63,846 nucleotides of DNA, taken from assembly GCF_018977255.1 (NCBI RefSeq), contig NW_024704771.1, forward strand, positions 3,658,155 to 3,722,000, given 5' to 3'. The notes under the pieces were generated by a model that saw nothing but the letters and a program-made list of their open reading frames with translations, did not search any database and was not told the DNA's origin. Below, one piece after another: positions 12,273-63,832 of the stretch (position 1 is the first letter of the stretch; each line of letters begins with the position of its first letter). This stretch comes from Callorhinchus milii. Its lineage: Eukaryota. A program made the translations under genes and the position numbers.

Positions 12273-12805
12273 TTAACCTGTCACTGGGCAGATTCTCAGA
12301 GATTTTCCGTCATCCTTATGCCCGGGATTGAAGAGAGGATAAAGTTTATCAGTGAAAGTTTGGGAGAAAGTGTGGAGATGAGACATGTTGTCAGCGTTGT
12401 AAAATGTCACCTGTCCCTCCTCATAGTCCAGGTACACCCCGATCTTCCCGGGTCTCACTGTCAGCTTGAGGCGGGTGGGAGGTGAAGACAGAGCCCGATA
12501 GACACCTTCCCACAGCCAAGCACCCCAGACCCCGTCGTCTGGTGACCACGTGATTGGTCGTTTCCTGTTGACAGACTCTCTGCTCACTCCCACAGTCCAC
12601 TCAGTTTTGTTGCCCACCTGCACCTCCCAGTAATGTCTCCCTGATGTGAAGCCCTCAGATCCCAGGACAATGGGATCTTTACTAAACCTCTTCGGGGAGT
12701 CAGGGAGTGGCTGCCATTCGTCTCCACGTATCACACTGGTCAGGTCCTCAGACAGGATGAGCCGGGGATGGGCTGTGTCAGGATCCAGAGTCAGAGAGAC
12801 CGGAG
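12273..12805 (-). CDS. Butyrophilin-like gene A, terminal B30.2 (PRY-SPRY) exon
   Basis: [40 protein letters not shown] and LYPLFNP motifs; CAG acceptor, phase 1; open to TAA. Confidence 0.92.
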
Positions 12806-12879
12806 CTGAGTGAGAGAAATAACACAAAGTGGAGTGAGGGGGAAATCCACAAATTCAGACTTTGTGCAAAAACATCTGG

Positions 12880-13325
12880 GAACAAAGGCTCACAATGTGT
12901 GTAGTTGTGGGAGGTGTGTGGGTGTGTGTGGGGGTGGGGGGTGAGGGTGTGTGTGTGGGAATGTGAGGGTATATGTGTGTGGTGGGGGTGAGGGTGTGTG
13001 TGGGGGGGATGTTTGTGGGAGGGGGGCAATGTGAGGGTGTTTTGTGGGGGCAACGTGTATGGGGGGATGTGTGTGTGGGGGATGTAAACCCCCTTGGGTG
13101 TGGGGGAATGTGACGGTGTGTGAGAGTGGGGGGCTGAGGACGTGGGGGGGGTGTCAGGATGTTTGTGGGGGTGTTTAGGGTGTGTGGGGGGGCTGTGTTT
13201 TTTGGGAGGGGAATGTGTGTATGGGGGGGTGGAATGTGATGGTATGTGTGGATGTGAAGGTGTGTGCGCGTGGGGGAGATGTAAGGGCATGTGTGTGTGT
13301 GTGTGTGGTGGGGTGGGTGGGGGGG
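12880..13325. repeat. GT/G-rich low-complexity microsatellite
   Basis: Imperfect (GT)n and G runs. Confidence 0.9.
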
Positions 13326-13452
13326 AGGGCCCATGTGAATGTATTCATTCCACACATCACTGAGCTCCATTCAGACCCTCAGTCCCAGTGTTTAGCAATG
13401 AAGGCGACAGGTTTATGTGAATATTATGTTCTCTGGTTACTGAGACTCTTAC

Positions 13453-13479
13453 CTGCACAGTGGGTAAGCTTTCTCCTGT
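13453..13479 (-). CDS. BTN-like gene A, 27-nt cytoplasmic microexon (xRRKLTHCA)
   Basis: TTCCAG acceptor, GTAAGA donor, phase 1-1; identical exon in gene B at 29604-29630. Confidence 0.75.
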
Positions 13480-13569
13480 CTGGAAACAAGAAGAAAGGAG
13501 AGGTGATCAGGTCAGTGCTCTCGGCCATGTTTGTCCCCAGCCACAGATTTTAATGTGTGAGAGGCTGAA

Positions 13570-13900
13570 TAATAATAATAATAATAATAATAATCCTTGC
13601 ATTTGATATAGCGCTTTTCACGTCGGGAGGACGTCCCAAAGCGCTTCACAGAACACACTGTAAAGTGAATTGACTGTATATTTGTGGGCGAACGCGGCAG
13701 CCAATTGCGCACAGCAATGTCCCACAAACAGTCGTAGATTGAAAATGACCAATTTATTATTGTTTTTGGTTTTGGAGGGATTATTATTAGGCTCTGTGTG
13801 GAGTAAGGAAACTTGCCCAAGGTTTGGCCCTCTGCCTGGAATTGAACTCAGGTCTCTCGCTTGCAAAGCGAGTGCTCTAACCACTGAGCTACAGGACTCC
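13570..13900 (-). mobile_element. Young-subfamily tRNA-Ala SINE
   Basis: Near-identical to 35390-35709, 57062-57396 and (inverted) 52080-52405; anticodon loop TTTGCAA. Confidence 0.9.
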
Positions 13901-13969
13901 ACAAATATTAAATAAGGGGATAATTTTCTATACAAATTGTAGAGAAACAACAGGACCATAACACTGGAC

Positions 13970-14295
13970 TGTGATAAAGGTCGTGTGACCCAGGTTTGAT
14001 TCCAGGGCAAAGCCTTAAGCAAGTTTTCTTTCTCCACATACCTCTGTTTAAATAGCAGTAACTGGATGATTTGTTTGTTGATTTGCGGATCACTTTCGTG
14101 GGCAATTATCCCTCAAAAATAAATAATTTGATATTGTAATCCATGACTGTTTGTGGGATGCTGCTGTGCGCAATTGGCTGCCACATTTCACCCACAAAAT
14201 ATAGTCACTCCACTTTACAATATATTCTGTGAAGCGCTTTGAGAAGTCTCAATGACGTGATAAGGCGCTACATCAAATGCAAGGATTATTATTAT
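13970..14295 (+). mobile_element. tRNA-derived SINE, inverted relative to 13570-13900
   Basis: Degenerate head, conserved body and tail. Confidence 0.8.
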
Positions 14296-15299
14296 ATTGT
14301 GTTTCTGGTCCAACAAGGAGGGAGCAGCCCCAGAACTAACTCTAGGAAATGAAGTCAGGAAAGGAAGTCATGTCAGAAGGGAACATTGGTAAATAACGAC
14401 CGTCACACAATTAGAATTAATACCATAATCAAACCAGTTGGAAGAGTCTCAGGTAAAGGTTTGGACCGAAAAAGTAATGAGATGTGAGGGACCTGGAGTT
14501 CTAAATAGACCTAAATAGATATAACTGTGAAATATGTCAATGAGATTTCAGCACAACAGAAACAGTTGGTTGGTTTTGCTTACCCAGGCTTAGCTGAAGA
14601 GCTGTGGAATAGAAAATAAAATTGTTACCACCGAAAAATGGTTAAGACAGTAACAAACCTATTCTGAACATTGTATTATGGTGATGAATAATCTGCATCT
14701 TTACAACTTTAACCAGCGTTATAAATTACAGCAAATAAAACTCAACAGTTCACTATAATTCACCCGGGCTCTCGCCTCTGAGTCAGACGCCTGTCAGAGA
14801 CTTTCTCCACCTCCATAACATACCCACTTCCACCCCGACCTCCCCCTCGGGCCGCTGAGACCCTGATCCATGCATTCATGTTGTCCAGCCTAGATTATAC
14901 CAACTCTCTACTGCTGCACTATTTTCCCTTCATAAACTGCAGACTATGCAGAACTCTGCAGCTCGTGTCCTTTCCTGCACTGAGCTCTGCTCCCCATCAC
15001 CCCCATCTTTGCCCGGCTTCACTGGCTCCCCATCCGCCAGCGAATCGAGTTCAAGTTCCTCGACCTCACCTTCAAATCCCTCAATGTTCCACCCGACCTC
15101 TGCCACCTCCTCAAGGCTTCAAATACTATCACTGCCTCCACTCCGTGGCCACCAGCCTGCTTCACGTCCCCACCCTCCCCACCCACCATCAGTGGTCAGG
15201 CTTTCAGCCGATCTGCCCCCACTCTCTGGAGCCCGGAGTCTCTTCATCTCCTCCCCCTATTCACAATCATTGTTAAACTTCTTTTATATTGATATATAC

Positions 15300-15795
15300 A
15301 CACACCCTCAACCACCCACCCACCCTCACCCAGCCTCAGCCACCCACCCACCCACCATCACCCAGCCTCAGCCACCCACCCACCCACCATCACCCAGCCT
15401 CAGCCACCCACCCACCCACCATCACCCAGCCTCAGCCAACCACCCACCATCACCCAGCCTCAGCCACCCACCCACCCACCATCACCCAGCCTCAGCCACC
15501 CACCCACCCACCATCACCCAGCCTCAGCCAACCACCCACCCACCATCACCCAGCATTCAACCACCCACCCACCCACCATCACCCAGCCTCAGCCACCCAC
15601 CCACCCACCATCACCCAGCCTCAGCCAACCACCCACCCACCATCGCCCAGCCTCAGTCAACCACCCACCCACCATCACCAAGCCTCAGCCAACCACCCAC
15701 CCTCACCCGCCCGCCCTCAACCAACCACCCACCGACACTCACCCACCCACACCTACTCACCCACCCTCAACCACACTCACTCACCATCCACACTC
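15300..15795. repeat. C-rich minisatellite (unit about CACCCACCCACCATCACCCAGCCTCAGC)
   Basis: Direct tandem repetition. Confidence 0.9.
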
Positions 15796-16061
15796 ACCCA
15801 ATAAAAGGGTTATTCCCACAAACTGACGACGTACAAAAAACACACCCATGTTATTGCCACGAGCTAAACCCCTCTCTCTGTCTCTGTGGATTGTGAACTG
15901 GATTAGAATGATCCTGTGTTACTAGATCAACCTCTGACCCACACAATCACATAAAACTTTACCGGTCATTCTATATCAAAGTTTATAAAACTTATACTTT
16001 TACATGAAAACAAACTGTGTTCTGTGACTTATGATGAAAGAGATTATTGATGGGAATTTAC

Positions 16062-16181
16062 CATTGATATCTCTGCGCTGTTTTACACTGTAGCCGATAA
16101 GAACAATCAGCACCAATATGGCAAGTGCTAAGAACACTGAGGAAATCACCAAACCCACTGGCACTTTGGGAAAGAACTCGT
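16062..16181 (-). CDS. BTN-like gene A, transmembrane exon (DEFFPKVPVGLVISSVFLALAILVLIVLIGYSVKQRRDIN)
   Basis: 120 nt, phase 1-1, hydrophobic stretch followed by basic stop-transfer residues. Confidence 0.88.
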
Positions 16182-16877
16182 CTGTTGAGAAATGTAAATA
16201 GACATTTAAACATCTATTCTGATTTCAAACAGCTACCTATTTACCCACATGTGACTATACTACACACAACACAAGCCTTTCACACTCTATACGTATCTCT
16301 GTCCTGCTAATAGCAATGTCACATCTCACTGTTACATGAATATATTCCATTAAAATCACTGATGGGAGAGGAAAACATGGCTTCATCATCTCAGGGTTGG
16401 GATAGACATTGTAAACCCTAAAGTTCATTATCTAAATATATGAGTGTTAAACTAAGGGCTACAATTAACCTTATTACTCACCTCAATCGTTCCCAATATC
16501 CAATTCTCTTAATTTTACCGATGTAATTGTATAGGATGCTATAAATTTGTAATAAATAAATCTAAATATTAATTTACGTATCAAATGCAAGGATTTTTTA
16601 TTATAAATGTGTTTTATTGTCAGGTCAAACAATTTGGAGAGCAGGGCAGGCGAGGACAGGAAGCAGGCAGTGTTTGCTGAGGGGAGGCAGTGCCCAGGGA
16701 GGTAAGTTTAATAAAATATCTTTAACTCAAAAGTACTCAGCTGCTGGAGAAGGTTAATGCCACGTCAGCTCACTGGACACTTTTAAGAAACAGGTTGGAG
16801 CTGGAATGGAAGGTGGTGGGTTTGGTATTTTGAGAAGATGTGATCAAATGGGCTGAAGGGTTTTCTTTATCTGCAAT

Positions 16878-17460
16878 GGGGTCTCCTCGGAGCTGAACTG
16901 GCCCCAAGGTGAAATGTTTGGCAACGGAAAGTTGGAATCGAGCCAGGCCTCTGTGACGGTCTCTGGTCCGGTTCCTGAGCCGCAGTATTCCAGGGCACTC
17001 ACTGCTGATGGCTCCACAGCCCAGCCTGGCTCATCGGCAGGAGCTGGAAGGACCGACCACCCACTGGAGGCAGGGAATCATCCCACTCAGCTCCTGCAGC
17101 CAAACCCCTAACTAACAGGTAGGGTGGTCCTAGCTGGAGAAACAGTAGGAAAGCTTGCCTGACTATGATAGCAATGGTAAGCTGTATGGTTTTAGCTGAT
17201 TAGACTCTAGCAGTTACCCCAACACACACTATGGGGTCCCCAAGCCTTGGCTCTTGCCAACCTGTGCCTAATACTCTCCGGAATTAGGTCAGCAGGATGC
17301 ATCCCTCCAGGGAGAGAGTGCGCATTCCATTCTAACAGTCTGTCTCTGGGATTTCCATGTGTAGGTGGATGCCTGGAAATTCTCAGTTGGGTTTGGAGAC
17401 TCTTAAGCATCGAGATAGGTTTCTGAATGTGTCAGAAACACAGCTGACCAAACAAAATCC
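16878..17460. mobile_element. Unclassified 583-bp insertion, absent from the paralogous intron of gene B
   Basis: Its flanks join directly in gene B (about 33345-33480); candidate degenerate 9-bp TSD ATCTGCAAT (16869-16877) / ATCTGAACT (17461-17469). Confidence 0.65.
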
Positions 17461-17554
17461 ATCTGAACTGATCTTGTATTCACTTTGTTTCTTACAAAAC
17501 CAGCAGCACATCTATCAAACTGTCACTAATATCTCAGTCCATGTGGTCACTGAC

Positions 17555-17600
17555 CTGAGATGGAGTTTTCCTTCTTGTTCATTTCTCTCGAGACCTAGTG
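17555..17600 (-). pseudogene. Relic duplicate of the 3' end of the IgC exon, with its donor
   Basis: ATATCTCAGTCCATGTGGTCACTGACCTGAGAT occurs both here and at the functional IgC donor (17935). Confidence 0.6.
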
Positions 17601-17934
17601 ATGTTATTGACTCATTACTCACTGTATCCAAACAGTGTGAGGTAACAGTAAATAAATAGGCCAGGAGGATGCTGAGTTTTATTACCAAATCACCTCAACT
17701 CAACTCCCCAGAAACAATTGTGAAACAGCACAGTTCTCTGGTCAGGTCACACCTGGATATTATACACAGATCTGACCACCTCAAAATAATGACATCAGAA
17801 GGTCCTGAGGACAACGCAGAAAACTACAGAGGCTGATCCTCAATATCCTGGTTACATCTGATAGAAATCACTTCATGTGTTACAGAAACCAACACCATTT
17901 CTCACACAATATCTCAGTCCATGTGGTCACTGAC

Positions 17935-18207
17935 CTGAGATTTGGAATCTTGTTTCTTGTTCATCTTCTGAATTGCGAATCAGAAACCTGATCTTGTTGG
18001 TTGAATGTTTTATTTCTATTTGACTGTTAATGTTGAAGAGATCTTTAGAATTCTTGCTGACTGTCAAGTGACTGAGTTTTGTTAAGTTGTTTCCCTGATC
18101 ATCAACCCACAGAGCCTCTGGTGCTGGGAACCATCCACTGGATTCACACAGCAGCCTCACACCACCATTGTGTTCATCAACGTGAATCCAAGGCTGACTG
18201 CCAAGTC
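17935..18207 (-). CDS. BTN-like gene A, IgC exon (GLGSQPWIHVDEHNGGVRLLCESSGWFPAPEALW...KIRFLIRNSEDEQETRFQIS)
   Basis: 273 nt, phase 1-1; BTN-type LG S.P...G+RL.C.S.GWFP.P motif; second Cys replaced by Phe. Confidence 0.9.
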
Positions 18208-18776
18208 CTGCAAGAGACAGAAGATGTGAATCAGACATAATAATACTTGCATTTGATATAGTGCCTTATATCGTTGAGACGTCTCAAAGCGCTTCATAGA
18301 GTATACTTTGTGGGCGAAACACGGCAGACAATTGCGCAAAGCAGTGTCCCACAAACAGTCGTGGATTGAGGGTCAGATCAGTTCAGATGGATTGTTTTTA
18401 AAAAAGGGATTATTACACCCAGAAAGCGATCTGCTGATCGACTAACAACCAGGTTCCTATTTAATGGTAGGTAAACAGAGGCATGTGGTGTACGGAAATG
18501 TAAGGTTTTGCCCTGTCCAGGAATCAAATTCAGGTCCTCTCGCTTGTGGAGCAAGCACTCTAACCACACACGGAATGAACCATATTTACACACAGGACAT
18601 TACAGTCCAGTAACTTTACTGAAGCCACATTTGCAACATTCTGACTACATTTATACGGATTCGTTCGTTTTCCTGTGTATGTCACGCATTTTATTTTGAA
18701 CAGAAATAACATCAACAAATAATGAACACTTGTTGTACCCACAGATTATATAAAATAAATTGTAAACATTACTGAC

Positions 18777-19124
18777 CTATAACGTTCAAGTTTACCTCTG
18801 CCTCTTCGTGGAAACTGCCGAGCTGAACATAACACGTGTACTGTCCATTATCTGACCCCCGCACATCTTGCAGTCTGAGAGACACATTGCCGTTCATAAT
18901 CTCCTCTACAAACAGTCCTGTCCTGTGTCTGTAGGCTGTATCCTGCTCACTTGGCTGCTCATGTCCCTCATTGTATAAGATCACAGGGGAGTCGTATCTC
19001 GTCCTGAACCATCTCACCTCCAGACGCTCTAGTGACAGGTGTGTGGAACACTTACAGTCCAGGACAACATCCGAACCAGCAGTGGCTGGGACAGGGTGGT
19101 CAGGGCCACTGACTGTGAATCTCT
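18777..19124 (-). CDS. BTN-like gene A, IgV exon
   Basis: 348 nt, phase 1-1; F.V.GP..P+.A..G.DVVL.C, EVRWFR, YR.RT.L, GNVSLRL..VR.SD.G.Y.C motifs. Confidence 0.92.
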
Positions 19125-19479
19125 CTGTGAATCTCTCTGGTTAATAACAAACAATGGACACAATTAGGATTTTCAGAATCAAACTGACTCTGACAAACTC
19201 TGTCAATAGACAGTCACTCATGTTAGCAGTGTTAGGATACTCAGAGAAACCTCAGCAAATCTCTCAAACTGCCTGGTCAGGTTAGCCCATCAGGTGATGT
19301 CTCTCACAGGCTGGAAGGGTTGGAGACATTGGCTGTAAATTCACCTGAAGCCAGTTTGTACATAGCGTCTGTTAGACAGAGAAACAATACATTAGGCAGC
19401 TCATCGAGTCTGTGATAATACTGGAAGTCTCATGTGACAATTTTCATATATTGAAAGAGGGAAATCAACAGATTCCAAT

Positions 19480-20770
19480 ACAAAATGACATTTGTACAGC
19501 GCCTTTCAAGTCGAGAGGACGTCCTTAGGTGATGAATAGAAGAATCCGAGCGTTGGGGGGGGGAGGGGGTGAAGGGTTTGGGATGAGGGAGAGAGGTAGG
19601 AGGGCGGCTGAAGGCATGGTCGAAAAAGAGGGTCTTGAGATGTGCCTTGAAGGAGGCAATGGAGGGGGCAAGGTGAAGGGATGGTGGGATGGAGTTCCAA
19701 AGGGTGGGGCAGAGGCTGAAAGCTTGGCCGCTGATGGTAGGGCGGGTCGGACGGGAGACATGGAGCAGGCCAGAGCCTGTTGAATGGAGGGAGCGGGCAG
19801 TAGGTCAGTAGGTCAGAGAGGTAGGAGGGGGCAAGGTCATGGATGACCTTCAAAGTGAGGACGAGGATTTTGAATTCTATCCTCTGAGGGATGGGGATCC
19901 AGTGGAGTCGGGTGAGGGTGGGGAGGCATTCAGAACAGAGGCAGAGGGAAGCTAGGAGGGTGGAGACATCAGAGATGAATGTGGGGGAGGTGTTGGAGGG
20001 GTGTTAAATGAGCAGACTTTTTAGGGAAAGATTGGAGGGATGGAGGGAAAACAACCGACAACAACAAATTACATTTGTATAGCACCTTTCAATGTCGGTA
20101 GAACCCAGTCGCTGGACAGCCAGAGATTTGGACCCAAGCAAGGTGTGATCAAGAGGGATTGAGGACAGGGAGGGTAAGGTTTGGAAGGTGGCCGAAGACA
20201 CCAGCAAAGAGGGTCTTGAGACATGCCTTGAAGGAGCGAGCAAGACGAAGGGACTGTAGGATGGAAAGGGTGGGGGCAGAGAGGCTTAAAGCCTGACTGC
20301 CAATGGTGGTAGGGCGGGGGGGAAGGTTGTGGAGCAGGCCGGAGCTTGCTAAGCAGAGGGAGTGGACAGGTTGATATGGCGTTAGTAGTCATAGAGGTAG
20401 AAGGGAGCAAGGCCGTGGAGGACTTTAAAGGCTAGGATGAGGATTTTGAACTCTATCCTCTGGGGGAAGGGAAACCAGTAGAGCCAACCCGGGCCTGGTG
20501 CGAGAGAATACACAAACTGCAGAGTTCTGGTTGATCTGCAGCTTGCGGAGGGATGAGATGGGAAGGCTGACAAGCGGGAAGTTGGCATAGTCAAGCCTAG
20601 ATATAATAACCGTGTGGATGAGGGTTTCGGTGATCTGAGGGGAGAGGAAGCGGCGAAGCCGGGCGAGTTGCGGAAGTGGGGGAAGGCAGAATGGGTCATG
20701 GCACGGATGTGGGGTAGAAAAGACAGTTGAGGGTCAAAAAAGATGCCAAGGTTCCGGACTGGAGGGGTCC
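19480..20770 (-). mobile_element. Degenerate L2 LINE fragments
   Basis: L2 ORF2 C-terminal peptides (IEFKILILAFKVLHGLAP.YL) and L2 3' tail. Confidence 0.75.
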
Positions 20771-21277
20771 AAAGAGGGAGTGGGAGGAGAAGTGTGCGCG
20801 AAGTTGATTGGATATACTGTAAAGGGTAGTAACTGGCTTTTTGTGGGGGAATGCATCAGCCAATTTGTCCACAGCAGCATCCCACAAAAAGCCAGTAATA
20901 GGACAGTAATCCTGTCATGCGGAAAGTGCTCTCTCTCCCCAAAGTTGTCATCTGATGGCTACGATGGAAACTAACCAACTAACTCACAGACCTGTAGTTA
21001 TTTGCATTTGTTCCTTCTTCACATCTTGACTAATGGTCTGACATTCAATACTTTCCAATCTCCTGATCACAGAATCCAGTTGATGTCTATTGTACCTGAT
21101 GTATCTATCACCTCATTTGCCAGTGACCAATGTCATGTCTGAAAACTGAGGGAGAACATTAGCAGCTCTCAGTGTGTGAATCACACTCACTCACAGCCAC
21201 TGCCTTCAGCAGCTCTCCCTTTACCTTCAGCAATTTAACACCAACAGAAATCAAACAGATTCAATGTGTTTCCTTAC

Positions 21278-21335
21278 CAGTCAGTGAGAGGGGAAGCACA
21301 AGCCATAGGACCTGAATACCGTGTTTCCAGCTCAT
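21278..21335 (-). CDS. BTN-like gene A, signal peptide exon (MSWKHGIQVLWLVLPLSLT)
   Basis: ATG, 58 nt, phase-1 donor GTAAGG; same peptide in gene B. Confidence 0.85.
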
Positions 21336-22482: not shown

Positions 22483-22578
22483 GTATGAAATATTCTTACA
22501 AAACATCCCCGGAATTGAATGCGCAAACCAAACACAATGTGTAGTTTCACTTTATAATGTGAACGTTTCTTATTTCAG

Positions 22579-22847: not shown

Positions 22848-23074
22848 TGCCAGAGTTTTCACCAATAACGACCTCCACACTGTCACCAGCGCTCTCTACT
22901 GGCGGCGGTACACCATCAGTGCTGTTTATCCTGTATTCAGCAACTGACCCTCTGATGTGGATCTCTCACCGGCTCACACACTGCCCCCCTAGTGCCCCGC
23001 CTTCCCTCCTGCAGCCCTCCTGCTCGGTGACCCCACTCACTCCACTTTGTGTGATTTCTCTCTCTCTCTCTCAG

Positions 23075-23610
23075 CTCCGGCCGCTCTGACTCTGGATCCT
23101 GACACAGCCCATCCCCGGCTAATCCTGTCTGAGGACCTGACCAGTGAGCGACGGACGGAGACAAACAGCAGCTGGTCCCCGACTCCCGGAAGAGGTGTAG
23201 TTACTGGCCCTTTGTCCTGGGATCTGAGGGCTTCACATCAGGGAGACATTACTGGGAGGTGCAGGTGGGCAACAAGACTGCGTGGATTGTGGAAGTGGCC
23301 AGAGAGTCCATCAACAGGAACAGCAACATCACATGGACACCAGAGGGTGAGGTCTGGGCTGTGGGATGGAGCCTATGAGGCTATGACGTCATCTTTCACC
23401 CGCCTGCGCCTGACAGTGAGACCCGGGAAGATCGGGGTTTTCCTGGATTATGAGGAGGGACAGGTGATAATTTACAACGCTGATAACATGTCTCATCTCC
23501 ACACTTTCACTCAAACTTTCCATGAGAAAGTTTATCCTCTCTTCAGTCCCTTGTTTGATTCTGAGAATCTGCCCAGTGACAGGTTAATCAGGAGAAAATT
23601 TCACTTATAA
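23075..23610 (+). pseudogene. TRIM relic, B30.2 exon with two compensating frameshifts
   Basis: PRY start and SPRY end are in one frame; [19 protein letters not shown] is in another frame. Confidence 0.85.
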
Positions 23611-23629: not shown

Positions 23630-24195
23630 CCCTGACACACACACCCCTGACACACACACCTCTGACACACACACCCCTGACACACACACCCCTAACCCTC
23701 ACCCCCTGACACACACACCCCTAACCCTCACCCCTGACACACACCCCTAACCCTCACCCCCTGACACACACACCCGACACACACACCCCTGACACACACA
23801 CCCCTAACCCTCACCCCTGACACACACACACACCCCTGACCCTCACCCCCTGACACACACACACACACCCCTGACCCTCACCCCCCGACACACACACCCC
23901 TAACCCTCACCCCTGACACACACCCCTAACCCTCACCCCCTGACACACACCCCTGACCCTCACCCCCTGACACACACACCCCTAACCCTCACCCCCCGAC
24001 ACACATACGCCTGACCCTCACCACCTGACACACCCCTAACTGTCACCCCCTGACCCTCACCCCCTGACACACACACCCCTGACCCTCACCACCTGACACA
24101 CACACCCCTAACCCTCACCCCCCCAACACACACACCCCTGACCTTCACCCCTGACCCTCACCCCCTGACCCTCACCCCCTGACCCTCACCCCCCG
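23630..24195. repeat. Minisatellite built from CCCTAA/CCCTCA/CCCTGA hexamers plus (CA)n
   Basis: Direct reading, e.g. CCCCTAACCCTCACCCCTGACACACAC. Confidence 0.85.
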
Positions 24196-24429
24196 GGGCT
24201 CATGGCCACACGGCCTCCGAGTTGGGAATGTCGGTGTTGGTGTAGAAAACCCCTTTGATGTGAAGCTGTTGATAGTCACAGATAATGATAATGTATTTGA
24301 TGTCATTATATTATACAATAAGTGATTGAATCTTCATTGAAAGGATTTGCCACTGAATATGTAATGTATATAACAGTATATGTGCCATTGCTGTTGACTA
24401 TATTGACTTTATACCATATTCTCACCAGT

Positions 24430-25030
24430 TGGGGCGGAGGTGTCAGAGGGACCGTCGCTCGAGCGCTTTTCTGCCCTTCGGCGCTTCTGGAATGTTCCCG
24501 CCCTCCCCCGCGCATGCGCACCTTCCCGAGTCAGGTCCCGGGCGGAAAAGCGCGGGAGCGCGGGACCGAGTGACGGTTGGAGACGGGACACAGCGCGCAC
24601 GCGCGGGAAGGCGGGGCCGCGCGAGACGGAGAGCGGCGGGAACAGTGCGCATGCGCCGACACCACGTGACAGCCCCCGCTGGGCGTCAGGACCCGAGAAG
24701 AGCGCGAGAGTCGGTAAGTGAGGAGCGGAGGACCGACCCCGCGCTCCCCCCCCGGACCCCAACACACACACACACACAGTGACCGCACACCGACACCACA
24801 CACTCCACACACCGGTGGGAGCCGCTGAAGGCGGGAAACGGGGCAGAGAAGAAGCGAAAAGGCTGTGACAGGACAGCGGAGCCGTCACCGCCCCTCACAC
24901 AGACTGACACACACAGCGGGAACGGGAGGCAGTGGCTCCGGACACGGCTCTGGGCCTGAGAGCCGCGGTCTGACCACCTGCCACAGGCGGGAAGTGTGTG
25001 AAGGGACACAGTGGCCGCCACACACAGCGG
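24430..25030 (+). promoter_or_regulatory. CpG-island promoter with a probable non-coding first exon
   Basis: High CpG density; NRF1-type GCGCATGCGC at 24510-24519 and 24647-24656; GC box GGCGGGGC; E-box CACGTG at 24663-24668; donor G|GTAAGT at 24714. Confidence 0.65.
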
Positions 25031-25099
25031 GTCCTGGGAGTCACTGTCTGACCACCTCAGTTTAACAACAAACGCTGAGACTCATCACCTTCTCCCCAT

Positions 25100-50370: not shown

Positions 50371-50736
50371 CTGGGAGTGCACAGGGGGAACAGTTGGGAA
50401 CAGCAGCGGAAATCATTCAACGACGACTTATAAGAATTTACTCGGCGCAAGAAGAACAAGGACCAATCCAGTTCTCCTGCCACCAACCATCCTGGCAGTC
50501 GCTTGACATGTTGTGTCCCAAACTATACACCGCATCCCCCAGGATATTATTTCCCAACAGAAATCTATCTCATTTGTTCTTGAAAGAATCGACTGGTTCT
50601 TTTGCAGCTTCACTTAAATCCGCGTCCTATGGCTACCAACCGACCCACCAGAGGAAACAGTTATTCACTCTATCAAAACCCCTCACAACACGTCTCTTTC
50701 ACAGTCTAAAGCTAGGAATTCAACTCTTCCACTGAC

Positions 50737-50775
<39 letters not shown>

Positions 50776-51194
50776 CCTTGCAATTGATATAGCGCCTGAT
50801 CACGTCTTCCAGACATCTCAAAGCGCTTCGCAGAATATACTGTAAATATACTGAATTCACTGGATGTTTTGGGGGACGAAATGTTGCCACACAGCCCACG
50901 GCACATTGCGCACGGCAGCGTCCCACAAACAGTCACGGGTTGATTGGCCAAATTATTATTATTACTACTTTTGAAGGGATTATCACCGCCGGAAAAGTGA
51001 TCCGCCAATCGACTAACCCGGGTCCTCTCCCCCGCGAGGCGAGCCCTCTAACCACTGAGCCGCAGGACTCCACCACGATACGAAGGGTGAACCCACCCCA
51101 TGAGAGGACGCCAGAAGATCAGAAAGAAATGAATGTTTTTAACTCATGCGTTTTTTTTTTAAAAAAATCAAAGGGGTAAAATGTGTTTTCTTAC

Positions 51195-51252
51195 CAGACT
51201 GCGAGAGGCAAAGTACACCGCAAAGTATCTGAGCAAAATGTTTCCACGTCAT
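51195..51252 (-). CDS. BTN-like gene C, signal peptide exon (MTWKHFAQILCGVLCLSQS)
   Basis: 58 nt and M.WKH start as in genes A and B, donor GTAAGA. Confidence 0.8.
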
Positions 51253-51394
51253 TTCACCAGACATTCCTAAAGGAAATTAGAACTGGTTAGAACACAGCGA
51301 AGGTGATTAGAGACGGATATGAGTGAACTTCAAAATCTTTCTGTGACATTTCTGATCGCGCAGTACAACTCACACCAGTCGGGACCGTGACATT

Positions 51395-52375: not shown

Positions 52376-52405
<30 letters not shown>
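52080..52405 (+). mobile_element. Young-subfamily tRNA-Ala SINE
   Basis: Reverse complement of the 13570-13900 type. Confidence 0.88.
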
Positions 52406-52407
<2 letters not shown>

Positions 52408-52649
52408 AAAATGGTCAAGAGCAGATCTTCAACGACAGTCAATAGGGCGGTGAGGCTGGGAAACGCATTGGCGGAGACTGTGGTCGATGCACAAAGTGGT
52501 CAGTGGAGGAAACGGACTCGTTGGGTGGATCCTCAGTGTTTCCGTGTTATTGTGGCTTCCATTGCTGCGCGGAGGGAGGGTCTGTCTCAGTCTGTCTCTG
52601 GCTTTTGCGGTTCAGTTCAGAGAGAGTTCCCCACTCCCTCGACACGCTC

Positions 52650-53180
52650 CCTCCCTCCCTCCCTCCCTCCCTCGCACACTCGGCCTCGCTCGCTCACTCA
52701 CTCCGAAGCTCACTCACGTACTCTTCCCTCGCTCACACACTCCCTCACTCACTCAGACTCACTCACATACAACGTCCTCCCTCATTCGCACTCCCTCACT
52801 CCCTCCCTGCCTCACGTACTCGCTCACCCACTCGCTACCTCACTCACACACTCCCTCCCTCACATACTCGCTCACACGCTCACTCACACTCCCTCCCTCA
52901 CTCACACCCTTACACACTCGCTCACACACACACTTACGCACTCTCGCGCACACTTCCTCTCACTCCCTCCCTCCCTCCCCCGCTCGCACCCTCACACAAA
53001 CACACACTCCCTCACTCCCACACTCACTCAAACCCTCCCTCACTCACGCACACACTCGCTCACACACTCACTCAAACACTCCCTCACTCACCCTCCTTCA
53101 CACACTCATTCCCTCCCACTCACTCCCTCCCTCCCACACTCCCTCCCACACTCACTCCCTCCCTCACACACACTCACTTA
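52650..53180. repeat. CT/CA-rich low-complexity repeat (CTCA/CTCC)n
   Basis: Direct reading. Confidence 0.9.
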
Positions 53181-53304
53181 CTCAATCCTGAGGTTATAGA
53201 GTCATTCGCAGTATTTTCAACCATATTGTTCGTACAGTAACATGTCCCCTCCCCACCTCCCCACCCCTTCTCTGTCTCCATCAGTCCCCTTCTCTATCCT
53301 CTCT

Positions 53305-54648
53305 CTCAACAACAACAACAACAACAAGATTCCATTTATAGAGCGCCTTTCACGTCAGGAGGACGTCCCAAGGCGCTGCACAGTTGGGTCATGACCCGAG
53401 CAGGGGGGAAATGGTCAGGGTGAGGGGAGGGAAGGGAGGGAGCGAGGAGGAGGAAGAGAGTCGAGAGGGGAGCTGAAGGCACGGTCAAAGAGAAAGGTTT
53501 TGAGACCGGCCTTGAAGGAGGAAAGGGAGGAAGCGGCGAAGGCACTGGGGGATGGAGTTCCAGAGCCTGGGGGCTGAGAGGCTGAAGGCCCGACCACCGA
53601 TGGTAGGGCGGTTGGGGCGGGGGACGTGGAGCAGACCGGAGCCAGAGGAACGGAGGGTACGGGCAGGTAGGTAGGGGGATAGTAGGTTGGAGAGGTAGGA
53701 GGGAGCAAGGCCGTGAATGGCCTTGTAGGTGAGGATGAGGATCTTGAAATCAATCCTCTGGGGGATGGGGAGCCAGTGGAGGCGAGCGAGGGTGGGAGTG
53801 ATGTGGTCGCGAAGCCTGGTGCGGGACAGTACACGAGCTGCAGAGTTCTGAATGACCTGCAGCTTGTGGAGGGAGGGCCGGGAAGGCCGGCGAGGAGAGA
53901 GTTCCCATAGTCCAGCCTTGAGGTGACAAAGGCGTGAACCAGGGTTTCAGCAGCGTGAGGGGTGAGGTAGTGCCGTAATCTGGCGATGTTCCGGAGGTGA
54001 TGGAAGGCGGTGCCAGTTGTGGTGCGGATGTGAGGGAGAAAGGACAGCTCAGGGTCGAACAAAACGCCGAGGTTCCTGACTGGCTTTGAGAGGTGGAGAG
54101 TGCAGCCTTGGATGCTGATGGTGTCAGCGCCTGAGGTGCGGAGGCGCTGACGTGAGCCAATCAGGAGGGCCTCGGTTTTTCGCACGTTGAGCTGAAGAAA
54201 GTTGTCTCTCGTCCAGGACTCGATGTCGGACAGGCAGCTGTCAGGACATCGGTGGTCGTGGAGTTGAGAGTAGAGGAGGAAAGGTAGAGTTGGGTGTCAT
54301 CCGCATACATGTGGAAGTTAACCCCATGTTTGCGGATGATGTCACCAAGGGGGAGCATATAGAGGGTGAAGAGGAGGGGACCGAGGACAGAGCCCTGAGG
54401 GACACCACATGAGACAGTACGGGGGGTGGAGGAGAAGCCATTCGTCGAGACAAAGTGAAGACGGTGAGAAAGGTACGACCTAAACCACTCAAGGACAGTG
54501 CCTTGAAGGTTGAGGTGGGAGGACAAGCGGTGGAGTAGGATAGCGTGGTCGACCGTATCGAATGCTGCCGATAGGTCGAGGAGGACGAGGAGACAGAGGG
54601 AGCCCTGGTCACAGATGGTCAGGATATCATTGGTGACCTTGACCAGGG
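53305..54648 (-). mobile_element. L2 LINE, 5'-truncated, RT C-terminal half, lightly frameshifted
   Basis: [54 protein letters not shown]; tail GCGCCTTGGGACGTCCTCCTGACGTGAAAAGGCGCT then (GTT)n. Confidence 0.93.
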
Positions 54649-55059
54649 CAGTTTCTCTCCCCCTCTCTGTGCCCCTCTCTCCCCCTCTCTGTGCCCCTCT
54701 CTCCCCCTCTCTGCGCCCCTCTGCCCCCTCCCTCTCTGTGCCCCTCTCTGTCTCTCTCCCTTTGGTTTTGGAGGGATTATTATTAGGGCTGTGTGTGTGG
54801 GGTAAAGAAACTTGCCCGAGGTTTGGCCCTGACCAGCCCTGAACTCAGGTCTCTCGCTTGCCCTCACCCTAAGCGAGTGCTCTAACCACTGACCCACAGG
54901 ACTCCTCTGGACAGAATAAAGAAACGACCAGAAAATATTAACCCCAGCAGAGTCGGTGGGGGGGGGAAGGCTGACAGTCTGCAACACAAGCGGAAATAAT
55001 TCAAGGAGGTTCCCAGAGAGAGACAGAGATCTGACCGTGTGGAGCCATCGGCTTCACAC

Positions 55060-55262
55060 ACACACACACAGAGAGAACCTGTCATTGAAACACTGCTCTT
55101 AAAAGCATCTATTAGTCTCCTCTCCTCAAGCGAACATATGACCCGAAAGTCCCCGTCTCTTACCTTTCTCTGCAGTCAGGGACGAGTGTTGCAAAGTACA
55201 ACATAAAATGGTGTTGGATGAAACGAGAAAGAATCTTTCAGTTTCACTTTCATTTTGAAAGG
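55060..55262 (-). promoter_or_regulatory. Paralogue of the gene B upstream block, including an ISRE at 55240-55251; probable promoter and 5' UTR exon of gene C
   Basis: Co-linear with 35750-36010 (ACCTGTCATT.AAAC, GCGAACA.TATGACC, CTCTTAC.TTTCTCTGCAGTCAGGGAC, ACATAAAATGG, AGTTTCACTTTC). Confidence 0.6.
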
Positions 55263-55399
55263 TTTTTTTTACATCAGTATAAGAATAGGATCAAGACGGA
55301 GGGAGGGGTGGGGTTGGAGGGTGGGGGGTGGGGGGGGCAACGGGGAGCGGTTGGGATAAGCGGGAGGACGCATCCAGAATCATGGCGGCGGGTAGAGGA

Positions 55400-55740
55400 G
55401 TGGGAGCGGGTGGGGAGGTCGGGGGTGAGCTGGTGGGGGAGATCGGGAGTGAGCGGGTGGGGAGATCGGGAGTGAGCGGGCGGGGGGGAGGTCGGGAGTG
55501 AGCGGGTGGGTGGGGGGTCGGGAGTGAGCGGGTGGGGGAGGTCGGGAGTGAGCGGGCGGGGGAGGTCGGGGGTGAGCGGGTGGGGTGGGGGGTCGGAAGT
55601 GAGCGGGGGAGGGGGGTCGGGGGTGAGCGGGTGGGGGAGGTCGGGGGTGAGCGGGTGGGGTGGGGGAGGTCGGGGTGAGCGGGTGGGGTGGGGGGTCGGG
55701 AGTGAGTGGGCGGGGGAGGTCGGGGGTGAGCGGGAGGTGT
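55400..55740. repeat. G-rich minisatellite (unit about GGTCGGGRGTGAGCGGGTGGG)
   Basis: Direct tandem repetition. Confidence 0.9.
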
Positions 55741-55959
55741 CAGGATGTGAAGGGATGTGCAGATGAGTGAGAGGATCTTGAAATGGAGTGGCCAGTCAAA
55801 TGGAGGCAGCGGGTTGTGGGCTGGGGTGAGGGTGAGGGTGGGGGTGGGGGGGGGGGGGTGAGCAGTCGGAGAAGTAGGGAGCTGCCAGGGTACGAAGGGA
55901 TATGGAAACGAGCGAGAGGATCTTGAGACCGGCAAAGAGGGCATTTGAAAAGCCCCCGC

Positions 55960-58827: not shown

Positions 58828-59217
58828 CTCTTGTTACTGTCATACACACACGTTTCTTTAAGGGAGAATCCAGTGTCTCGTGGTTTATTTCACACAGGAA
58901 CTCGCGCTGGTCATGTGCATCTACGTCCACCTGAAAGGCGAGCCCAAAGCTACAGCTGACGGTCCTATCGTTGTTCTCGGTATATTCGGGGGACTTTATC
59001 TCATATTCAATCGCTGCAAAACGTATGCGTTGAACCGACGGCTTATATTCCGGTGGTCCATAGGATTCCTCCGAGAACGTGCGGATAATTCCCTTTGCTC
59101 CGATTCCCCATTTGACAGTCAATGCTTTGGGGCTGAACCGAGTGACAGTACAGATCAGAGTCTCGTGATCTCCGTGCTTCACTGGGCCAGGGTCCAACAG
59201 CTGGATATCCTGCGGTA
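58828..59217 (-). CDS. B7/NCR3LG1-like gene D, extended Ig C1 exon (130 codons)
   Basis: LICTVTRFSPKALTVKW...EFLCEINHETLDSPLKK; 390 nt, phase 1-1, TTAACAG acceptor, GTAAGT donor. Confidence 0.85.
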
Positions 59218-60007
59218 CTGTTAAGAAAATCTTGTTATCAAGATATCAATGGCGCCACGAAAAGAAATAGTGCAACTACTGTCCTTGTAAATCTTTACAA
59301 TTTCTTAGTATTGAAGGTCCTTTGAATGAATCTTTAACGCAAAAGGCACTATAGGGTTTTTTTTGGGGGGGCGGTCAGTCTGACAGATGCAAAAACCCAT
59401 CACCATGCTTGATATCCAAACCAAACTGAGAATTCCTTGCATCCCATATAGACAAACAGCTAGAAAGCCTTCAAAAAGGAGATAGTTCAGGGACAGAACA
59501 AATACATCCACACCAAGGGGAAAGGATGACTAAGGAAATCGGGATTAAAATAACACAGAAAAAGGAGATTTCTGATAAATGTCAGGTCCAAAATACTGAA
59601 GATAATCAAATAGAATATAGAAAGTACAGAGGAGAACTGAAAAAAGGAAATAATAGGGGCAAGGAGATTGTATGAGAAAAGATTAGCGGGAACCCTAAGG
59701 TATTTTATAAGCGTATAAAAGGTTAGTTGAAGGGGTCTGTGAGGGACCAACGAGGAAATCATACAGCACAGAAGGAGGCCATTCGGCCCATCGTGTTCTT
59801 TGAAAAGAGCTATCCAATTCAATCCCACTCCCCGCGCTCTCCCCCCAGGGGGCAAGGCGGAGGGATTGAGGGAGAGCTTTGGGGCGTTGCGGCTGAAGGC
59901 ACCGACAACGATATCGGCTTTGCCAGCCATAGAGGAGTCCAGAAGGTGGAGAGCAAACAACAGAGGAGCGACGAGAACAAGACTGATATCGTCCTCTGGG
60001 GTCTCAC

Positions 60008-60375
60008 CTCCTATGACGTGAAACCCGTGCTGGCTTCCCAGGTTCTCTGCGTTCTCGTCTCAATAACCCGATACACAAACTCCGCCCTGTCGTGTTTCCT
60101 TGCATCCGCGGGAAACGATATAAAGATGTTGGGTGAAAGCTCGGGGCAGCCCAAGGCGGTGAAGTGATTGATGGAATCTTCCAGTAACTTCAGCCTGTTT
60201 TCGGCTGAGTCTTCCCTTCCGTAATGCCTCTCCAGGACCTGGGTTTCGACGTCGTTTTTCCTTATGGCCAAGACACACTTCCTCGCTTGCAATGAACAGC
60301 CACGAAAGGAACAGATCCCACTGGTGAATTGGCCTTGCAGGGCCTCCGCTGGCTGCAGAAGTATCTGCACCTTAA
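60008..60375 (-). pseudogene. Gene D, degenerate C1-like exon with a 1-nt frameshift near its 3' end
   Basis: GICSFRGCS...DRAEFVYRVIETRTQRTWEASTG; 368 nt between a phase-1 acceptor and a GTGAGA donor (369 needed), giving TAG at 60011-60013. Confidence 0.6.
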
Positions 60376-62887
60376 CTGTAACAACAACAACGACACCTTG
60401 CATTTATATAGCGCCCTTCACGCAGGGCAGAGTTTCAGAGCGCTGGATTATTACAGCATCAAGCTCCAGTGCCCAGCCTAAGATTTTACATTGATGACTC
60501 GTATTTCAAGGGCGGGGGGGAGCGCTCAGTGACAATAATCGTGATAATAATGATAATAATAATCCTTGCATTTGATGTAGCGCCTTATCATGCCCTCGAG
60601 ACGTCTCAAAGCGCTTCACGGAACACACTGCAAAGCGAATTGTCTGAATAGTTTGCGGGCGAACCGCGGCAGCCGATTGAGAAATTAAGACTTTTTGAGA
60701 ATTTGATCAAATTCCGGATGCGCTGAAATGCTACATAGATAGAGCCGGAGTTCCCGTACGATATTTGTGCAAACGTTCTCTTACCTTTTGAAAAACACTT
60801 GAGGCATAAAGGAAGGTCGACCAGTTGCTTATATTTTATGATGATAAAATGACAAGAAGCGCCATCAGTAAAATCACAGCACAAGTGATAGAGAACCAGG
60901 AATACCACGGAAGGGATCCTTAAGGAAACAAATCACAGGATCAGAGCCAAATCTAATAATAGTAATGAATAACAATCCTTGCGTTTGATACAGCGCCTGA
61001 TCACGTCATTGAGACGACGTCTCCAAGAGCTTCGCAGACGACACTGGGAAGTTTATTGACTCTATATTTGGTGGGCAGCCAATTGCCCAGAGCAGCGTCC
61101 CACAAACAGTCATGGATTGAGTGACCAAGTTATTATTATTGTTATTTTTTTCTTTGAACGGATTATTACCCCAAGCAAAAGCGATCCGCCAACCGACTAA
61201 CAATCGGGTTCCAACTTGCTGCTGGGTAAACGGAGGCGTGTGGTGCGGAGTAAGGAAACGTGCCTGAGGTTTTGCCCTGCCCGGAAATTGAACCCAGGTC
61301 CTCTCACTTGCCAGGCGAGCGCACTAACCATTACGCTACAGGACTTCACAAAGGTAAACCAGATGATAATGATAAAATTATTCTAGCATTTCACAAGATT
61401 CCCCAGATTAATGCAGATGAAGAAAGCCTTTCAACCGATCTGATCTCATCTCTCCAGAAGGCCCACCCTACCATCCTCTCATCACAGCATCAAGCATCAA
61501 GTTCCAGTATCCTGGCCTCCGCCAACCATCCTGGCAACCTGTTCAGTCATTAATTACACGGATAACGAAATACTTCCTGGTGTCTGTTCTGAAATTGCCC
61601 TTTGCAACTCTGCAACGACAACGGATGACATTTATGCTGCGCCTTTCAAGTCAGGATGTCCCGAGGTGCTGGACGGTCAGGGAGCTGGTGGCTGCGATCA
61701 TGAGGGGTGTAGGGTGGGGAGGGTAAGGGCAGAAGGGTGACCGAAGCCACGGTCGATGAGGTGGGTCTTGAGACGGGTATTGAAGGCTGCAAGCGAGGGG
61801 GCAAGGCGGAGGGACTGCGGGATGGAATTTCAGAGGGTGGGGGGGGGGGGCAGAGAGATCGAAGGCCCGCCCGCCATAACGGTGGGGCGGACGAGCCAGA
61901 GAGACGTGCAGCAGGTTGGAGCCCATTGAGCGGAGGGAGCGGGAAGGATGGTAGGGGGGTTAGGGGGTCACAGAAGTAAGGATGACCAAGGCCATGGAGG
62001 GCTTTGAACGTGAGGACCAGGATCTTGAACCGTATCCTCTTGTTCTATCTTCTAAACTATTGCTCTGGGTTTATTTTTTCAATCCTATTTAAAATGTTAC
62101 GCTCTATAAAGTCCCCTCTGAGACGTTACATAGCTCCCCTCACACAAGGTAGCCTCCCAGAATCGCCGGCCCATGTCCTCTGGTTCCACCGTTCAGTTTA
62201 ACTTGTCTCCCGAGGCTCATAGCTCTGACATTAGGGATCATTTGTTTCGCTCTATTGCACTTCCTCTCGGGCCTGGGAAACCCCTTATGTTGCAGTGGCA
62301 AACAGTTTGCAGTATTTTGGTGCCAAACACCGTGACGTTGATAAAACGCCTTATCACGTGAAACATTCAGACGTGGGTCACGTAGAGTGCAGTGGCTGCA
62401 CATTTGTAGGCAAATGCTTCAGCCAATTTCTGCCTTAGTGCCTCAAACAGCCACGAAATAAGTGAGTCCGTTTTTTGGTTTGAGAATTACTGGCCAGGAT
62501 TTCTGTAGGTGGACTTAGTTAGAGGTGAGTCAGGCCCAGGCTGAAACCCGCACTTTTACTGGCGTTGAAATGTTTGTCGTTTTATAGACATGAGAGAACG
62601 TAGCACTCATTTGCTGGGACGATAACGAGTATAATTCTCTCCCCCCGAATTCCCTCACTGCACGTTTTCTCTCTTTACCTTCGAAAAACATTTATAAAAT
62701 CCATCTCTCTGCATCAGCATCCCCAAACTCTTCTTCTTCCTTTCAAATCCCCATCGTCTCTGTGAAGAGCTTCAAGACGTTCATCCAACTTGACCCTATA
62801 AGTGTTGTTCTACTCACCTAACTTTGGATCATTTGGGGATGGGAGGGTTGACTGTTACACTTTGGTTACCGTTACAGTGTGACTTAC

Positions 62888-63214
62888 CCATAACTGTGAT
62901 GGTCACTCTTTGTTTCACAAGAGTCTCGGACGCTTCATGTCTCACATGACAGATGTAACTGTCACCTCCCACCACTGGAGGCGCCCTTAGGGTTAGGACA
63001 TTGACAGCGCTGAAGGTCCCGTCGCTGTTCCTCACGGGATTCCCTCTCTGGATCTCCTGACCGGTCATCTCTTGCAGGGTCTCGACGGTTGAGATCTTGA
63101 ACCAGAGAATGGAAATTTCTTCCGGGTAGAAACCAGAGGCCTCGCAGCGCAATGATCTCCTGAACCCGGGCTTGAGCTCCAGCAGGGGTCCAACTGGGGG
63201 AACACTGGGGGAAG
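62888..63214 (-). CDS. Gene D, Ig C1 exon
   Basis: LRCEASGFYPEEISILW...NSDGTFSAVNVL...YICHVRHEA; 327 nt, phase 1-1. Confidence 0.9.
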
Positions 63215-63505
63215 CTGAACACAAGATAATGATTATTGTTAGAGGACAATCAGATGGAATGGCTGAACAAAGCCATTCAATATAATAAATAATAAAATTC
63301 GTGACTTCAAGCCACGACTGTTTGTGGGGACGCTGCTGTGGGCAATTTCGCCCACAAAATACACAGTCACTGCACTACAGTGTATCCTGTGAAGCGTTTT
63401 GAGACGTCTCGAAGACGTGATGAGGCGCTGTATCAAACGAGAGGATTATTATTGTTGCGATGACTGTCAAGCTTTGGAGGGAGAGTGGACAAGAGATAGA
63501 AGTAC

Positions 63506-63832
63506 CTGATATCCTTAAAGTGCAAGTGGCTGATCCCTCGTCGGGTGAGGCGATGACTGTACACTCGTAGTCTCCCTGATCTTCAATACCAACCTCAGGG
63601 AGGAACAGAGCTGCTTTGCCCTTTGCCAGCTCACCAGCAAACCGAGTGCCAACCCTGGACACACGAATGCCACCCTTAAAATACGAGATCACAAGCTCGT
63701 TGTTCCTCTTCCAGCTCACTAACAGGAACTGGGGTTCAACAGGTGCATCGGGGACAAAATCGCAGTTTATGGTCACGTTCGTCCCAACGGCCGTCTTCAG
63801 CATCTGTGGACTCAGCATCACTTTCAGAGCCA
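63506..63832 (-). CDS. Gene D, IgV exon (B7-H6/NCR3LG1, tapasin or SIRP-like V domain)
   Basis: LKV, NVTINC, VSWKR, G.AALFLP.V.IEDQGDYECTV..SP; 327 nt, phase 1-1; the signal exon would lie beyond the window. Confidence 0.85.

Follow-up and report, generated by a model that had tools for sequence, protein, structure and literature searches.

Butyrophilins (BTN) are recognised by a defining architecture in which an IgV domain and a butyrophilin-type IgC domain are followed by a transmembrane (TM) segment, short heptad exons and a PRY/SPRY (B30.2) domain, and most of them are heterodimers (PMC8813856). Expansions of related genes, among them those of chicken BG and the BTN-like genes of teleosts and amphibians, include hybrid genes (PMC8813856). 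A 2026 survey found butyrophilins in the elephant shark, Callorhinchus milii, off the chromosome that carries major histocompatibility complex class I (PMC12841164). The analysis presented here concerns a stretch of 63,846 nucleotides from this chimaera, referred to as the window, which lies at ~3.66-3.72 Mb of the 4.1-Mb GenBank scaffold MU249860.1 (assembly GCA_018977255.1) and is reversed relative to it. Four neighbouring genes are found in the window, all on the minus strand. Three of these (genes A, B and C) are butyrophilin-like and the fourth (gene D) is B7-H6-like, as an earlier note on this DNA had proposed from the letters alone.

The cluster is likely to represent 50 kb of a butyrophilin-like family that has expanded in the elephant shark itself, situated beside a B7-H6-like gene and forming a typical fast-evolving immune cluster. 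The family evolves through tandem duplication and gene conversion, with loss of exons and insertion of repeats. The anatomy given in the earlier note is mostly real and its coordinates are exact, but the locus had also been presented as the best candidate for an undescribed system. This goes too far, since RefSeq already has models for the four genes, under the names BTN1A1-like, BTN3A2-like and NCR3LG1-like, and C. milii butyrophilins have been reported (PMC12841164). The cluster holds further members of known families and no new kind of system.

A species-specific family and its intact pair

The position of these genes was examined in a maximum-likelihood tree of sampled C. milii, elasmobranch, ray-finned fish and tetrapod sequences, with no human sequence among them. 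The 13 C. milii sequences sampled all fall into one clade (support 100/99), to which none of the sampled sequences from elasmobranchs, ray-finned fish or tetrapods belongs. Within the clade, A is sister to B, and C is placed with the paralogues P0058 and P0061. On the same scaffold, BTN-like genes are located at 0.73, 0.76, 2.27, 2.34 and 3.66-3.72 Mb. Because the clade is species-specific, the RefSeq names BTN1A1-like and BTN3A2-like do not denote orthology, and the pattern fits birth-and-death evolution with some gene conversion. Birth-and-death had already been suggested for this locus, and it fits the clade as well as the pseudo-exons and a tandem pair whose synonymous divergence (dS) is 0.175. 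Like the expansions of chicken BG and of teleost and amphibian BTN-like genes, this is a lineage-specific multigene family marked by copy-number change and domain loss. The losses differ from those of chicken BG, which keeps IgV and loses IgC and B30.2, whereas gene C of C. milii keeps IgC and loses IgV.

Gene A (12273-21335, minus strand) is an intact butyrophilin-like gene of seven exons, with a spliced coding sequence of 1389 nt and a product of 462 amino acids. Its exons encode the leader (21335-21278), IgV (19136-18777), IgC (18207-17935) and TM (16181-16062), followed by mini-exons of 18 nt (14601-14584) and 27 nt (13479-13453) and a last exon containing PRY/SPRY and the stop codon (12805-12273). 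The translation is identical to NCBI P0001, 'butyrophilin subfamily 1 member A1-like [C. milii]', and Pfam detects V-set (1e-12), C2-set_3 (PF22705, 2e-18), PRY (6e-24) and SPRY (5e-26) in it.

Gene B (26490-35132, minus strand) is the intact tandem paralogue of A, likewise with seven exons, and has a coding sequence of 1410 nt for 469 amino acids. The leader exon (35132-35075) is followed by IgV (34290-33931), IgC (33781-33500), TM (32578-32459), the two mini-exons (31307-31290 and 29630-29604) and PRY/SPRY (27034-26490). AG/GT sites flank every exon junction in both genes, the frame of gene B is uninterrupted, and its IgC domain is homologous to the butyrophilin-type IgC. The current NCBI model of gene B, P0028 (372 amino acids), begins at a methionine inside IgV, while P0007, an older RefSeq model, covers the full length. 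In both genes the TM exon measures 120 nt and encodes a hydrophobic stretch of ~23 residues ahead of the 18- and 27-nt exons; the TM segments of A, B and C were assigned by reading the sequence, without a predictor. Each of the two proteins is a type I membrane protein consisting of IgV, IgC, TM, two heptad mini-exons and PRY/SPRY. The two full BTN-like genes described in the earlier note are therefore genuine, with seven exons each, intact frames and the expected Pfam domains.

A and B resemble mammalian BTN1A1, BTN2A1, BTN3A1 and BTNL3/BTNL8 in their phase-1 Ig exons and their 18- and 27-nt mini-exons, and they match the butyrophilin-defining architecture outlined above (PMC8813856); the B30.2 match to BTN3A1 reaches 165 bits. 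They differ from the mammalian butyrophilins in that the C. milii copies sampled form their own clade without one-to-one orthologues, and in their very short juxtamembrane region with two mini-exons.

The two genes are tandem duplicates. Conserved blocks show 80-94% DNA identity between them, and at the dS of 0.175 their dN/dS is 0.75 (0.6-0.83 across all domains). Divergence is distributed unevenly along the IgV exons (18777-19136 in A, 33931-34290 in B), which are 97% identical at the 5' end and 62% identical in the last 60 nt, corresponding to the F-G strands, as dS climbs from 0.10 to 0.82 toward the 3' end. This mosaic suggests the boundary of a gene-conversion tract or a mosaic ancestry. 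Positive selection on the IgV of A and B was considered and rejected: the last 24 codons are divergent, but dS is likewise high there (0.82), and since dS rises along with divergence the pattern is that of a mosaic or of gene conversion and is not evidence of selection.

Promoter-like blocks and the truncated gene C

The consensus of the interferon-stimulated response element (ISRE), GAAANNGAAACT, has three sites in the window against 0.28 expected. Two of these three exact sites, at 35987-35998 and at 55240-55251 on the gene strand, lie in mutually homologous blocks on the minus strand. The gene B block (35777-36020) contains the exact ISRE GAAAGTGAAACT at 35987-35998 and a splice donor next to 35916-35934, and its homologue (55023-55274) contains the ISRE GAAAGTGAAACTGAAA at 55236-55251. 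The blocks are 75% identical, have no other homologue in the window and end in the same splice donor, preceded by an identical 19-mer. They look like a promoter with an untranslated first exon. The ISRE of gene B is found 855 bp upstream of the gene B ATG. The second block is located 4 kb upstream of the ATG of gene C, with a LINE-like (long interspersed nuclear element) insert between the two and an acceptor site just before the ATG.

The same module of ISRE and donor recurs 3.2 kb upstream of the gene encoding P0030 (at 2.34 Mb, 1.3 Mb away), while no ISRE-bearing module was found within 10 kb of three other paralogues checked. Gene A has a degenerate ISRE-like site, TAAAGTGAAACT, with one mismatch (22543-22554, minus strand), ~1.2 kb upstream of its ATG. 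The sequence around this site aligns only loosely with the blocks of genes B and C and has not kept the splice donor. The shared ISREs of the earlier note are thus exact in the blocks of B and C, but gene A carries only a one-mismatch copy. From these elements it would be reasonable to infer that B, C and the P0030 gene are inducible by interferon or interferon regulatory factors (IRFs). An ISRE-core site, GAAACAGAAAGC, is also present 266 bp upstream of the gene D ATG, ~1.5 kb beyond the window end (L006 9735-9746).

Gene C (47122-51264, minus strand) is a truncated butyrophilin-like gene whose five exons were traced with the paralogue P0058 as guide: leader (51264-51195), IgC (50370-50092), TM (49563-49444), an 18-nt exon (48077-48060) and tail (47183-47122). 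Its spliced product is identical to the NCBI model P0122, 'butyrophilin subfamily 3 member A2-like', of 182 amino acids. The IgC domain matches C2-set_3 (PF22705) at 3e-20. A tblastn search with P0058 found no IgV exon in the 824-bp intron between leader and IgC, most of which is made up of a SINE-like (short interspersed nuclear element) repeat, so the IgV-less BTN-like gene of the earlier note is real; its B30.2 domain is lost too. A decayed remnant of that domain at 46917-47113 (minus strand) was located by tblastn with P0058 and by viewing the reading frames. Only the last ~65 residues survive, spread across three frames and containing a stop codon, and the annotated tail of gene C is another frame of this relic. 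The coding capacity of the gene is a leader, an IgC domain, a TM segment and a 26-residue tail only. Gene C is a paralogue from another subclade, and in it the IgV exon was lost and the B30.2 exon decayed.

Human BTN3A2 offers the closest comparison, as gene C too has lost B30.2 through decay of the last exon, has a short tail and is named BTN3A2-like in RefSeq. It differs from BTN3A2 in being without IgV as well, and its loss is independent of the primate event. We know of no characterised functional butyrophilin that has lost IgV.

Most probably, gene C is transcribed and in the course of decay. In UniProt V9L1P8 (P0123), which we take to be transcript-derived, a TM segment and tail identical to those of gene C are joined to the Ig part of a P0058-like paralogue, and this match is weak evidence that the TM and tail exons of gene C are transcribed. 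V9L1P8 may itself stem from a third, nearly identical gene or from a chimeric assembly of transcripts. The chances are evenly divided as to whether gene C has already become a transcribed pseudogene, in which case only A, B and D would matter and the remainder would be ordinary duplication debris without coordinated function. The missing IgV exon, the scrambled B30.2 remnant and a coding tail that comes out of frame from this relic all point to a pseudogene, as do the introns filled by SINE-like and LINE-like inserts and the neighbouring orphan exons, which indicate ongoing decay. Such a fate is harder to reconcile with the five of five retained exons that preserve their AG/GT sites and phase, with the cysteines kept in IgC, with the well-conserved ISRE and first-exon block upstream, or with the exact occurrence of the gene C TM and tail in V9L1P8.

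Gene D and the question of a coordinated system

Gene D occupies 60836-63832 in the window (minus strand) and consists of a V exon (63832-63506), a C1 exon (63214-62888) and an exon encoding TM and stop (60918-60836); its leader exon lies ~1.3 kb past the window end. The TM exon is situated 2 kb downstream of the C1 exon, is phase-compatible and encodes GSLPWYSWFSITCAVILLMALLVILSS followed by the stop codon. Together the V, C1 and TM exons equal residues 20-263 of RefSeq XP_042200825, 'NCR3LG1-like isoform X1' (natural cytotoxicity triggering receptor 3 ligand 1-like), and NCR3LG1-like is the name of the gene in UniProt as well. The product of 263 amino acids comprises leader, V, C1, TM and a two-residue tail, with V-set and C1-set domains in Pfam. 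Compared per V-C unit with solved structures, it matches human B7-H6 at 76.5 bits and B7-H3 at 46-47 bits per unit, and it has the motifs CE.SGFYPE..I.W, DGTF and Y.C.VRH in common with human B7-H6. A homologue search with gene D returned its own cluster only.

The likeness to B7-H6 (NCR3LG1) lies in the succession of V, C1-set and TM and in the rank of the human protein as best solved match. Human B7-H6 has a long signalling tail. Gene D differs in its tail of two residues here and in its butyrophilin-like neighbours, which the human gene does not have. Flajnik et al. 2012, which the elephant-shark genome paper cites, reportedly treats B7H6 and NKp30 'from sharks to mammals'.

The earlier note had described a multi-C1 B7-family gene without a TM exon. 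The B7-family V and C1 exons stand, but a TM exon is present (60918-60836), and both the second C1 exon and a 360-nt open reading frame (ORF) sit past the stop codon of gene D and belong to older models only. The orphan C1-set Ig exon (58829-59218, minus strand) has a ~45-residue insert, good AG/GT sites and a Pfam C1-set match of 2e-06, and its PDB matches are to two halves of C1 domains. It is absent from the current RefSeq gene and included in the older models P0121 and P0126. The ORF of 120 codons (60017-60376, minus strand), an exon of older gene D models, has good splice sites and, in the present assembly, a stop codon ahead of its donor site. It has no relatives in Pfam or PDB, and a search of 1.84 billion representative proteins returned nothing but its own model. 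AlphaFold2 run without an alignment on P0121 was uninformative on the 120-residue segment (mean pLDDT 35.6, Ig domains ~30), the TM helix being the sole confident element of the model. In our reading, gene D therefore encodes a short B7-H6-like protein anchored in the membrane, and the exons downstream are debris, although the ORF and the orphan C1 exon may instead belong to a lineage-specific isoform.

A truly long gene D, with a product of 535-561 amino acids in which V, C1 and a hydrophobic segment precede a novel 120-residue domain and a second C1, is improbable. The older RefSeq and Ensembl models do have this length and run on through the ORF and the orphan C1 exon, with five exons in one frame, junctions all in phase 1 and good splice sites. 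Only single-base length differences in two places (~60845-60850 and ~60014-60020, minus strand) separate the window from those models, and the short form would then reflect sequence errors or a null allele. Placing an Ig C1 domain past a TM helix would, however, make it cytoplasmic, which is topologically implausible. The two exons have been dropped from the current RefSeq annotation, the 120-residue segment lacks any homologue, and structure prediction lends it no help. The two single-base length differences decide between the products of 263 and 535 amino acids, and each may be a polymorphism or an assembly error.

An older and larger history can be imagined, in which this holocephalan locus, with several genes driven by a conserved ISRE-bearing first exon, preserves part of an ancient interferon-inducible 'stress-ligand' cluster that gave rise to the BTN and B7-H6 lineages by tandem duplication, and in which the IgC-TM product of gene C acts, like BTN3A2, as a modulator of the pairing or trafficking of full-length chains. 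This scenario would be an unlikely one.

The integrated system envisaged in the earlier note is very unlikely. It would comprise A and B as a heteromeric pair that selects receptors, C as an IgC-only modulator and D as a soluble multi-C1 decoy, all co-induced by interferon and acting on gamma-delta T cells or NKp30-bearing cells. In its favour, the genes lie next to one another in the same orientation, and in mammals the partners of BTN/BTNL heteromers come from neighbouring paralogous genes. B and C have an exact ISRE block in common, the ORF of gene C is intact, its splice sites are clean and RefSeq has a model for it, and human BTN3A2 is functional without B30.2. Against this, the soluble decoy fails because gene D carries a TM exon and then a stop, as in XP_042200825, and the extra C1 exon and the ORF without relatives follow that stop. 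A and B are recent duplicates within a clade of at least 13 sequences and not an old conserved pair, and gene A is without the shared ISRE exon. Gene C has no IgV, a domain that to our knowledge mediates every known contact between a BTN and its receptor, and its B30.2 is visibly decaying. No TRIM gene is present in the window.

The preferred reading, in which part of a butyrophilin-like family expanded in the elephant shark lies beside a B7-H6-like gene, also has evidence weighing against it. The dN/dS of 0.75 could equally reflect relaxed constraint on A, on B or on both, and the gene B leader might go unused, given that P0028 starts inside IgV. Of seven BTN-like genes checked, only three (B, C and the one encoding P0030) have the ISRE-bearing first exon, which is degenerate at A, and we infer across a 4-kb intron that the block at 55.2 kb would belong to gene C. 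The older gene D models differ from the window at two places, and either assembly could be right.

If the locus is nonetheless read as a member of this expanded family, A, B and D might act as cell-surface ligands or regulators of lymphocyte receptors, by analogy with their mammalian relatives, and the B30.2 domain of A and B might serve as an intracellular sensor or adaptor. Transcription of B, C and the distant paralogue would start from the conserved promoter, whose ISRE would make it responsive to IRFs or interferon; the same may hold for D. The leftover pieces (the inverted B30.2, the 5'-truncated B30.2, the orphan C1 and an orphan P450 exon) are taken to be debris of duplication. In the literature on C. 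milii we found no description of an ISRE-bearing first exon, of a member without IgV and B30.2, or of adjacency between B7-H6-like and BTN-like genes.

Assembly, orphan fragments and implications

An assembly artefact, with haplotypes laid in tandem or a mis-join at a gap, is scarcely credible: the region does contain a gap of 201 Ns and many repeats and paralogous exons, but A and B are too divergent for alleles (dS 0.175, protein identity 75-82% per domain), the older assembly also had them as separate genes (P0002 and P0007), and a minisatellite carries on past the gap. The possibility that A and B are haplotigs was rejected on the same divergence. The minisatellite (42947-43420, non-coding, found with Tandem Repeats Finder) has a 45-bp period and holds the gap (43191-43391) inside it. 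Its left part (42947-43188) runs into the gap, and 22 of the 27 bases right after the gap fit the 45-bp repeat unit, a fit equalled in 2 of 500 shuffles. Continuity across the gap is likely, not proven. GC content around the gap is 0.31, ORFs across it are low-complexity strings only, and the closest coding pieces are a P450 relic 2.3 kb to the left and the last exon of gene C 3.7 kb to the right. Between 37 and 61 kb, the NCBI gene table places no gene across the gap, so that no reading frame depends on it.

Loose SPRY fragments had been noted in the cluster and are confirmed at three places: 39499-39975 and 46917-47113 on the minus strand, the latter being the gene C remnant, and 23032-23598 on the plus strand. 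The plus-strand copy is an inverted, frameshifted butyrophilin B30.2 pseudo-exon with PRY and SPRY split over two frames. At the DNA level it matches the B30.2 exons of genes A and B with 82-84% identity, over a stretch that includes a little intron, and it has two frameshifts. This pseudo-exon is probably what the earlier note took for a TRIM relic. A pattern search in all six frames of the window found no RING or B-box Cys/His patterns, and four plus-strand ORFs upstream of the 23-kb PRY/SPRY gave nothing relevant in Pfam. The TRIM reading was dropped after the six-frame search drew a blank, and the PRY/SPRY in question is an inverted BTN B30.2 copy.

The orphan B30.2 exon at 39499-39975 (minus strand) is 5'-truncated, with a Pfam match to SPRY only (3e-26). 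Its SPRY is intact, the first ~35 residues of PRY are gone, and a repeat adjoins its 5' end. It is 49-61% identical to B30.2 domains of C. milii and shark BTN-like proteins, and no called gene surrounds it in the NCBI gene tables. In PDB, pyrin, TRIM21 and BTN3A score about equally, and an origin from BTN as opposed to TRIM or pyrin therefore cannot be assigned to this fragment.

Between the BTN-like fragments sits the last exon of a cytochrome P450 gene, a relic with the heme-Cys motif (40681-40893, plus strand). It matches Pfam p450 at 9e-12, over profile positions 407-461 only, and nine plus-strand ORFs upstream of it gave no other P450 exon in Pfam. LINE-like sequence is also present in a gene B intron (27596-28589, plus strand), as a reverse-transcriptase fragment with a weak Pfam RVT_1 match, and upstream of gene C (53415-54612, minus strand), where a YADDTQL-type motif was recognised by eye. 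SINE-like copies occur throughout the window, including a cluster of ORFs with 190 members. Three GC-rich low-complexity tracts (24000-26000, 52400-53200 and 55300-55950) yield long ORFs on either strand whose translations abound in P, H, T and S; these are spurious and not genes.

A galectin-like gene lies on the plus strand, with two exons seen at 6409-6651 and 7007-~7170 and an NCBI product of 157 amino acids with PF00337. The exons match PF00337 at 2e-07 and 4e-04, and in PDB the protein matches galectin-9, -3, -8 and -4. In comparison with the N-terminal carbohydrate-recognition domain (CRD) of galectin-9 only the W is kept, and the other residues are changed (H to Q, N to G, R to C, N to S, E to M and R to D). 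A tblastn search with an approximate human galectin-1 query gave no match. A second run of Ns (6101-6248) is found just upstream of the galectin core exon, and the 5' part of the gene may lie beyond it. The earlier note had counted a non-lectin galectin as part of the cluster: the gene is real and its sugar-binding residues are replaced, but it falls outside 12273-63832. It resembles GRP/LGALSL and GRIFIN in keeping the fold (PF00337) while most canonical sugar-binding residues are substituted, and differs from them in being most similar to the CRDs of galectin-9, -3 and -8 and in its place outside the cluster.

For annotation, the locus draws attention to RefSeq names that imply mammalian orthology, to a truncated current model of gene B and to older models of gene D that are fused. 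It is a clean example of birth-and-death evolution, in which a pair of intact genes, a member that has lost domains and orphan exons lie side by side. That a B7-H6-like gene has BTN-like genes as neighbours would favour a shared origin of both families by tandem duplication. If the regulation suggested by the ISRE-bearing blocks is true, control of butyrophilin-type ligands by interferon or IRFs would be older than the split of cartilaginous fish from bony vertebrates.

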